A stretch of DNA of 64,000 bases from Schmidtea nova (taxonomy: Eukaryota), in the NCBI GenBank assembly GCA_044892505.1, contig CM097883.1, positions 333,436,001-333,500,000 on the forward strand, given 5' to 3'. The notes below the pieces were generated by a model. It worked only from the letters and a program-made list of their open reading frames with translations, had not been told where the DNA came from and did no database searches. Positions 62,960-63,820 of the stretch are shown here, in pieces. Each line of letters begins with the position of its first letter. The first letter of the stretch is position 1. The position numbers were made by a program, and so were the translations under genes.

Positions 62960-63351
62960 TCAATAATGTCTGTATTCTTCTTTTAACTCCCACTTGTTTC
63001 TTTCAGATGGCAAAGTACTTAGTTTAGCAATTTCCAGTAAAATTTCTTTAACATATGTTGGTGATTGTTTTGTCATTTGGTTTTGGATTTGTTTAATTCG
63101 CAATTCGACTGAACAACTAATTTATTTGTTATAGGTTTTTCTGGATTTGTTAAAAAATCTGGATTACAAATAAATTTATAATTCATGTTTGAGTTATTTT
63201 CTGCGTCCATTACGATTTTGCCAACAACTGAATCTTCAGTCAACTTGATCCAATCTTCATAGATGTAATTTGGAATTTTTACTAACCAAAACTTTGAATC
63301 GGCATTTGCAGAATCGACAGCATATACTTGATTATCTTGTTCACTATTCAT
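62960..63351 (-). pseudogene. GTF2F2: Terminal GTF2F2 copy with 367-bp internal deletion (92-aa truncated ORF, 63073-63351)
   Basis: The junction at 63075/63076 joins bases equivalent to 3516 and 3884 of unit 2. An out-of-frame TGA follows ...NKSKTK directly. The winged-helix domain is lost. Confidence 0.92.
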
Positions 63352-63470
63352 TTTCACTATTCTTTTTAAACTTGATTTTTTTACTTAATTGTTTCGTTAA
63401 TTGGAACATGTTATTTATTTTATTTTATTTCTACAAATTTCATTGGGTAAATATTTTACAAAAGAGCGAT

Positions 63471-63820
63471 ATTTGACCTACTTAATTCTTACATAAAAAG
63501 ATTTTAAAAATTATTATTGACATACTTATTCGTTGTTATAGCAACTCTAAAATATTTGACATACTTATTTCTGGCATAGAAAAAAATTGAAAATCAATTT
63601 GACCTACTTATTTGTTGTCTTAGCTACTAGCAGATTTTGAAAATCAAGTTGTCCTACTTATTCGTTGCCATAGCAACTAGCAAAATTTTTGAAAATCAAG
63701 TTGACCTACTTATTCGTTGTTATAACAACTTACACGTTGTTATAGCAACTTAAAAGAAAAAATTTGACCTACATTAAAAAAAAATTTTCTAGGGGGGGTG
63801 TGGGGGGTCTTGACCTTTAT
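63471..63820. repeat. Degenerate minisatellite (39-63 bp period), core TTGACCTACTTATTCGTTG(C/T)(C/T)ATAGCAACT; possibly part of an interspersed element
   Basis: TTGACCT-like cores start at 63473, 63517, 63556, 63599, 63649, 63701, 63764 and 63810. 14-bp near-palindromes lie at 63532, 63664, 63716 and 63736. Confidence 0.8.

Follow-up and report, generated by a model that had tools for sequence, protein, structure and literature searches.

The right end of a tandem TFIIF-beta/tRNA-Lys array in Schmidtea nova is a junction of two truncated sequences and does not prove a founding duplication breakpoint

The window analysed here is a 64-kb stretch of the Schmidtea nova genome (C2:333436001-333500000; genome 1.25 Gb, three large chromosomes). 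A tandem array in this window, whose units couple a tRNA-Lys gene to a TFIIF-beta paralogue, ends on the right at a point where both partners are truncated (63469-71) and no target-site duplication is present. A first-pass annotation had proposed that a short motif at this end, repeated near the left end, marked the breakpoint of the microhomology-mediated tandem duplication that created the unit. Since a truncated Polinton lies beyond the motif and the left motif is generic, the motif is no proof of such a breakpoint. We favour, weakly and at somewhat below even probability, a secondary end-joining junction that carries a 13-bp stub of a further unit.

Results

A composite unit joined at a 13-nt motif

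A pattern search of the 64-kb window for ACAAAAGAGCGAT revealed exactly 33 copies on the plus strand, all in phase, from 2342 to 63458. When up to two mismatches were allowed, 57 matches were obtained compared with 2.6 expected by chance. Spacing between copies was 1924 bp in 21 intervals, with variants of 1922, 1904-1906 and 1925 bp and a last interval of 1555 bp. The motif is followed by GAAACGG..., the start of the tRNA-Lys 5' flank, in 32 of the 33 copies; other DNA follows it once, from 63471. These results bear out part of the first-pass annotation: the letters and coordinates that it gave (63458-63471, 814-828 and 2342-2354, with AGCGATA exact at both ends) were correct, all internal units switch at the motif, and the array stops in the same phase (32 internal junctions, end at 63458-63470). 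The features of the array interior are as follows.

2342..61915, plus strand: internal junction motifs, n = 32 (first 2342-2354, last 61903-61915), each reading ...taaatatttt, then ACAAAAGAGCGAT, then GAAACGG
3401..4159, minus strand: representative intact gene, an intronless TFIIF-beta paralogue of 252 aa
4160..4265, plus strand: gene-side upstream DNA, 106 nt; homology to the copy at C2:338.44 Mb ends at 4261 (taaata)
5209..5221, plus strand: motif-like 13-mer ACAAAAAAGCGGT, 943 nt past the junction motif

Each 1.9-kb unit is a composite of four parts, a tRNA module (about 320 bp), a spacer (about 680 bp), an intronless TFIIF-beta segment (0.92 kb) and the tetranucleotide tttt, and the units lie 0-8 substitutions apart. 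In the representative unit, tttt occupies 4262-4265, between the end of the homology to the dead copy and the motif. The upstream order is the same for every intact gene copy, namely about 106 bp of its own DNA, the motif, about 170 bp of tRNA flank and a divergently oriented tRNA-Lys gene, as the earlier reading of the tRNA 5' flank as upstream DNA of the intact genes had held. Among the 32 unmasked tRNA-Lys genes, 30 carry a CTT and two a TTT anticodon; the two TTT copies (19835-19907 and 25607-25679) gave a tRNA-model score of 57 bits compared with 65 bits. Four units (motifs at 48494, 50399, 54228 and 59978) are without the 18 nt (tcattgggtaaatatttt) immediately left of the motif, and this loss is a further breakpoint at the junction-motif spot.

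The 13-mer ACAAAAAAGCGGT was found at an equal phase in 24 of the 32 units between motifs (chance expectation for such a 13-mer, about 0.04 per unit). It lies about 41 nt beyond the 3' limit of the gene segment that the dead copies have in common, so that the gene segment is flanked by two similar direct 13-mers. ACAAAAAAGCGGT may be the remnant of a target-site duplication, or a coincidence. Sequence comparison of the spacer with the Polinton arm described below revealed no relationship.

The TFIIF-beta gene and its copies

Domain analysis of the array gene identified PF02270 (1.5e-20, 73.5 bits) and PF17683 (2.4e-05, 25.3 bits; cut-off 25), and human GTF2F2 aligned to residues 15-252 at 1.7e-26. 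The gene is therefore predicted to have the N-terminal dimerisation domain and the C-terminal winged-helix domain of TFIIF beta (GTF2F2/RAP30). It is one of at least three TFIIF-beta paralogues in the genome and is GTF2F2-like by homology, not assigned as the canonical orthologue. Two intron-bearing paralogues, at C2:411.2 Mb and C1:297.3 Mb, have 34-71% protein identity across exons, and additional degenerate gene fragments occur elsewhere in the genome. A homologue search in other genomes yielded one homologue (67%), and exact-protein look-ups gave no match; a search for RNA runs found none.

The last unit of the array differs from the intact units, and it comprises the following features.

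61903..63470, plus strand: terminal array unit, 1555 + 13 bp, with subtype substitutions as in the units at 52324, 56152 and 58074
62960..63351, minus strand: broken terminal TFIIF-beta copy, 92 N-terminal codons from the ATG at 63351, then a frameshift into TGA

The terminal unit carries a deletion of about 367-369 bp within the coding sequence, with its junction near 63075/63076, and the C-terminal remainder of the gene lies in a different frame. The terminal array copy is dead.

The first-pass annotation had called for comparison with an unamplified GTF2F2 locus. None was identified in this genome. Apart from the array, a single full copy is present, at C2:338.44 Mb (338,437,777-338,438,688), and it is a solitary pseudogene with 98% DNA identity to the gene segment only. 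This copy has a premature stop at codon 54 (TCA to TGA) and AT-rich low-complexity surroundings, and on both grounds it was rejected as the unamplified ancestral locus; it may have arisen from the array as a processed pseudogene or by capture during repair. Its homology spans unit positions of about 1000-1920 and ends at ...cattggCtaaata, 4 nt short of the motif, which shows the gene segment to be a separate piece that excludes the motif. A degenerate gene piece at C2:334.00 Mb (91% identity) is truncated on both sides and for that reason carries no information on the ancestral locus. With respect to a retrogene origin, the array gene is intronless where both paralogues have introns, and the dead copies share an mRNA-sized segment only; no poly(A) or poly(T) remnant was found at the gene segment.

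The right flank is a truncated Polinton/Maverick arm

The last motif copy is followed by ATTTGACC..., and the right end of the window was resolved into three features.

63458..63470, plus strand: terminal 13-nt motif ACAAAAGAGCGAT, where array-derived DNA ends; the closing AT (63469-70) is also part of the transposon arm
63469..63844, plus strand: fragment of a Polinton/Maverick right terminal inverted repeat, outer 375 bp, with TTGACCTACTTA-type subrepeats
63845..64000, plus strand: second, younger dispersed repeat, 90-94% identity to other copies

A genome search with 63471-64000 returned at least 98 matches on all three chromosomes (1528 candidates), and the arm repeat was found as inverted pairs 11-23 kb apart. 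As a reference we used a complete element of 18.25 kb at C1:16,205,773-16,224,025. Its arms are about 1.1 kb long, 92% identical, bounded on the inner side by (ATT)n and terminated on the outer side by ...CACTTCCTACTACT, and it is framed by a 6-bp target-site duplication, GATGTA. The open reading frames of this element encode a split protein-primed DNA polymerase B (pPolB; PF03175, 2.1e-14), with weaker matches to an A32-like ATPase (Pox_A32 / RNA_helicase), a double-jelly-roll (DJR)-like domain and a chromodomain. No integrase core was detected in the reference element by domain search, the chromodomain match being weak. The reference element is a Polinton/Maverick.

The window fragment has about 79% identity to the arm of the reference Polinton, and 63469/71-63844 has 70-89% (about 80%) identity to other arm copies. 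Its outer terminus, ...CACTTCCTACTAtT at 63844, points away from the array, towards which the inner side is turned; about 700 bp of inner arm and the entire element body are missing. All other arm copies examined run inward as ...caagttttttAT followed directly by ATTTGACC, which shows that the window arm is cut internally at the array end, with only the 2-nt AT at 63469-70 overlapping between array motif and arm. Homology to the transposon arm takes in the A at 63471 and probably also the preceding AT (63469-70). By hand count, transposon homology leftward through the motif amounted to 12 of 30 matches and was rejected as not significant. The repeat at 63845..64000 is the DNA that had received the Polinton insertion, and the arm fragment is a relic, not an active insertion. 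In place of the original upstream DNA that the first-pass annotation had expected beyond 63470, the window contains this inner-truncated Polinton fragment (63469-63844) and another dispersed repeat.

Transposon DNA from 63471 onward would be expected if a Polinton or another transposon had been inserted at 63470 after the array was formed, with the array or its native flank continuing beyond. The orientation of the fragment speaks against this, the terminus facing away and the inner side being truncated. No copy of the motif, target-site duplication or continuation of the tRNA flank was identified in the 10.5 kb to the right of 63470, and no array sequence was found in 20 kb to the right. A genome-wide search found no array-type flank outside the array and no reciprocal junction of an inversion or translocation. 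Such a later insertion is very improbable and close to refuted. The specific form of it raised in the first-pass annotation, a young transposon with a target-site duplication, is contradicted by the age and state of the fragment (about 80% identical, truncated, duplication absent). The missing inner arm was also absent from the 20 kb at and around the left end of the supercluster described below. The 25-mer across the junction is unique in the genome assembly sequence, and 32-39% of sampled words of 63380-63900 were present in four sequencing runs of one organism.

The left motif belongs to the neighbouring tRNA-Lys/U6 repeats

The first 990 bases of the window are the tail of a tandem array with a 739-bp tRNA-Lys/U6 unit. 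This array occupies the adjoining 20 kb to the left and was traced about 50-56 kb leftward (C2:333,380,330-333,436,740); where sampled, its units were 100% identical to one another. The window contains two N stretches (224-359 and 990-1489), and unmasked letters were used for the comparisons. Three features were placed on this side.

409..514, minus strand: U6 snRNA gene of the neighbouring 739-bp repeat
741..963, plus strand: flank of the first array unit, 100% identity to the 739-bp tRNA/U6 units, without the 21-bp segment of internal units
814..827, plus strand: ACAAAAAAAGCGAT in the 739-type tRNA-Lys 5' flank of the first unit, also at 74-87

The first-pass annotation had taken 814 as the left outer end of the array. 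ACAAAAAAAGCGATA is present at 814-828 and again at 74-88, and AGCGATA is exact at 822-828 and 63465-63471. In the 20 kb left of the window, ACAAAAAAAGCGAT was found in 27 of 27 739-bp units checked, in the context ...CATG ACAAAAAAAGCGAT AAAACC, and the motif at 814 is thus generic to the repeat family. The 739-bp periodicity crosses 814 without discontinuity, and together with the 739-type flank of the first unit this removes 814 as a boundary. The gene part of the first unit (1490-2354) is 100% array consensus, and the switch from 739-type to array-type sequence falls within the N stretch 990-1489. Should this 500-N run reflect the real length, the distance from tRNA to coding end would be about 375 bp less in the first unit than in the internal units. 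Judged from its sequence, the left end is not an untouched founder copy.

A second type of tRNA-Lys/U6 array, with a 760-bp period and present in both orientations, was identified at C2:336.77-336.82 Mb, 3.3 Mb away. Here the context reads ...CCCG ACAAAAAAAGCGAG AAAAC, and the version of the motif in the tRNA/U6 family is ACAAAAAAAGCGA followed by T or G. Homology of the tRNA/U6 unit to the array unit begins at unit position 3, within the motif; family homology extends left of the motif in the tRNA/U6 repeats and right of it in the array. The internal array flanks are a separate lineage, with a 21-bp segment that is common to the 760-bp type and absent from the 739-bp type; the 739-bp type seems to have lost it between T(A/G)TAAATG direct repeats. 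Overall, the tRNA flank of the TFIIF-beta array showed 92-94% identity to the 760-bp type compared with 87% to the adjacent 739-bp type. Past the first 32 nt or so, the internal flanks differ at 4 of 151 positions from the 760-bp type and by 5 differences and an indel from the 739-bp type. The first ~32 nt are hypervariable, with 7-10 differences per pairwise comparison.

The tRNA-Lys/U6 array, with variant units, reaches leftward to about C2:333,380,330; it and the TFIIF-beta array make up one pol III gene supercluster, about 119 kb long. Its left end (C2:~333,380,330-333,396,000) consists of 1567-bp variant units and 2309-bp higher-order units. In the 1567-bp units, a 739-bp unit is joined to about 890 bp of native left flank; the junction, GAGAGAAAAAAA followed by AATCATTC, is blunt (0 nt microhomology) and lies 40 nt past the motif start. 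These left-end variant units represent an independent flank-capture duplication. The length of the 739-bp array is a non-integer number of units. A literature search on tRNA-Lys/U6 arrays returned nothing relevant.

Origin of the right end

Truncation on both sides of 63470 together with the 2-nt overlap gives the right end the look of an end-joining junction. In the reading that we favour, the tRNA-Lys upstream module would begin with the 13-nt motif, which would be present by descent from the tRNA-Lys/U6 repeat family. An additional unit would have broken 11-13 nt into its own tRNA module and would have been fused, via the AT overlap, to an internal point of the Polinton right inverted repeat. 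With this fusion the intervening DNA would have been lost, the Polinton body and any original upstream DNA with it, and the motif would be a module boundary rather than a preserved founding breakpoint. We infer both the origin of the motif by descent rather than by chance microhomology and this order of events. The presence of the motif as a native part of 739- and 760-type tRNA/U6 units counts for descent, and its two differences fit the local divergence of the hypervariable ~32-nt patch. Two further observations were counted for truncation: the gene segment is discrete, the dead copy stopping 4 nt short of the motif, and the cluster frequently shows rearranged ends, as in the non-integer 739-bp array and the flank-capturing variant units. 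Against truncation, a break would lie as little as 11-13 nt past the start of a 1924-bp unit by chance in about 1% of cases (roughly 0.7% for a 13-nt stub, 13/1924), unless the site is a hot spot. In the genome search, moreover, neither a reciprocal junction nor any trace of the deleted part turned up, and the reading leaves the origin of the internal gene-to-tRNA-flank junction unexplained. The identity of the end motif to the internal version is predicted by truncation and by a founding duplication at the motif alike.

A founding duplication of this kind, the core of the first-pass annotation, would have paired ACAAAAGAGCGAT with ACAAAAAAAGCGAT of the tRNA flank in one tandem duplication (MMEJ or MMBIR). 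The ancestral order would have been the end of the tRNA/U6 array, a tRNA module, spacer, gene, 106 bp, ACAAAAGAGCGAT and the truncated Polinton arm; unequal crossing-over would then have expanded the array to 33 copies, leaving 63470 as the original right breakpoint. It yields, without extra assumption, an array of integer units plus the motif. Exact microhomology of at least 6 nt is expected for a random breakpoint pair at P = 0.003 and of at least 7 nt at P = 0.001, so the exact sharing of 6-7 nt is not due to chance and reflects either guiding microhomology or descent. In addition, the junction motif matches the right-end version and not the version of the tRNA family, a 760-like parental flank (GCGA, then GAAAAC) would account for the G after GCGAT, and the analogous duplication at the left end of the supercluster did capture 890 bp of native flank into 1567-bp units. 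However, the breakpoint would have to fall 0-2 nt from an older, unrelated truncation junction of a Polinton arm, an unusually long imperfect microhomology would be needed, and the homology of the dead copy ends short of the motif. The junction of the analogous left-end duplication has no microhomology, the left motif occurs away from the array edge as well, and the internal flanks are not derived from the flank type seen in the first unit. The founding duplication thus retains the internal junctions and the phase at the motif and loses the native right flank and the specific left motif; it is viable, not favoured, and we regard it as unlikely.

Both coincidences, the phase of the break and the position of the Polinton truncation, would be removed if a single complex replicative event (serial template switching by FoSTeS or MMBIR) had made the unit and the right end together. 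The nascent strand would have returned from the gene upstream region to the tRNA flank, giving the duplication, and in the last round 13 nt of flank would have been copied before a switch on AT into the Polinton arm. FoSTeS/MMBIR events typically leave short templated stretches where they join sequences, and both the 2-nt overlap at 63469-70 and the unique junction 25-mer are consistent with this scheme. The loss of intervening DNA would be required in the same event, however, and one genome cannot separate a complex event from truncation or a founding duplication. We consider this scenario quite improbable, and all other explanations together slightly more so.

The coincidence of phase also bears on whether a ~45-nt patch, about 150 bp upstream of tRNA-Lys, is a recurrent breakage hot spot of the pol III supercluster. 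This patch comprises the motif and the next 30 nt, and it holds the internal gene/tRNA junction, the right end of the array and the 18-bp deletion in four units; the flank-capture junction at the left end of the supercluster also falls within it. A hot spot at this site is a doubtful proposition at present.

Discussion

The array resembles the products of microhomology-mediated tandem duplication (MMEJ / MMBIR-FoSTeS) followed by unequal crossing-over in being head-to-tail, with junctions identical at one short shared sequence, and in having a length of integer units plus that sequence. Such a duplication should find the motif in both parental flanks; the left parent has it (27/27 units), and the dead copy is without it. 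Unlike in such systems, the DNA outside the ends is not native, unrearranged flank, being a truncated Polinton arm on the right and a 739-homogenised flank on the left. The array 13-mer may also be shared by descent, and on the left the neighbouring array has replaced the parental copy. Truncation of an array end by deletion and non-homologous end joining likewise leaves two truncated partners with a 2-nt overlap, no target-site duplication and a dead terminal gene copy, as at 63470; the difference is that the break observed here keeps phase with the unit boundary, falling 11-13 nt past it, as chance would allow about 1% of the time. The flank matches the ~1.1-kb inverted repeats of an 18-kb Polinton/Maverick with a 6-bp target-site duplication, but only the outer 375 bp of one arm is present in the window. 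As in the flank-capturing variant units of pol III gene arrays, the TFIIF-beta unit joins one tRNA module to non-array DNA. In contrast to the left-end variant units, where the junction is blunt and the native flank is continuous outward, the outward DNA at the right end is a transposon fragment.

The readings differ in what a single-copy allele would contain. If a single-copy or short-array allele reads ...tattttACAAAAGAGCGAT and then the same truncated arm, this would support the founding duplication. If a single-copy allele or a sister species reads ...taaatattttACAAAAGAGCGAT plus the truncated arm, with no tRNA flank, the motif/arm junction would predate the amplification.

Preserved founding breakpoints of gene amplifications are rare, and a clean one would show the route by which the TFIIF-beta paralogue and the tRNA genes were co-amplified. 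The right end of this array cannot serve as proof of such a breakpoint: it is a junction of two truncated sequences, the left motif is generic, and the sole copy with non-tRNA upstream DNA is dead. If the patch upstream of tRNA-Lys is indeed a hot spot, neighbouring DNA would be captured into tRNA arrays again and again through a site-directed nuclease or integrase, or a pol III-linked fragile site, and the DNA captured here would be a transcription-factor gene. Regardless of this history, the intact copies stand head-to-head with tRNA-Lys and keep only some 106 bp of gene-side sequence upstream; with so little native sequence, the tRNA flank would be their only candidate promoter region.
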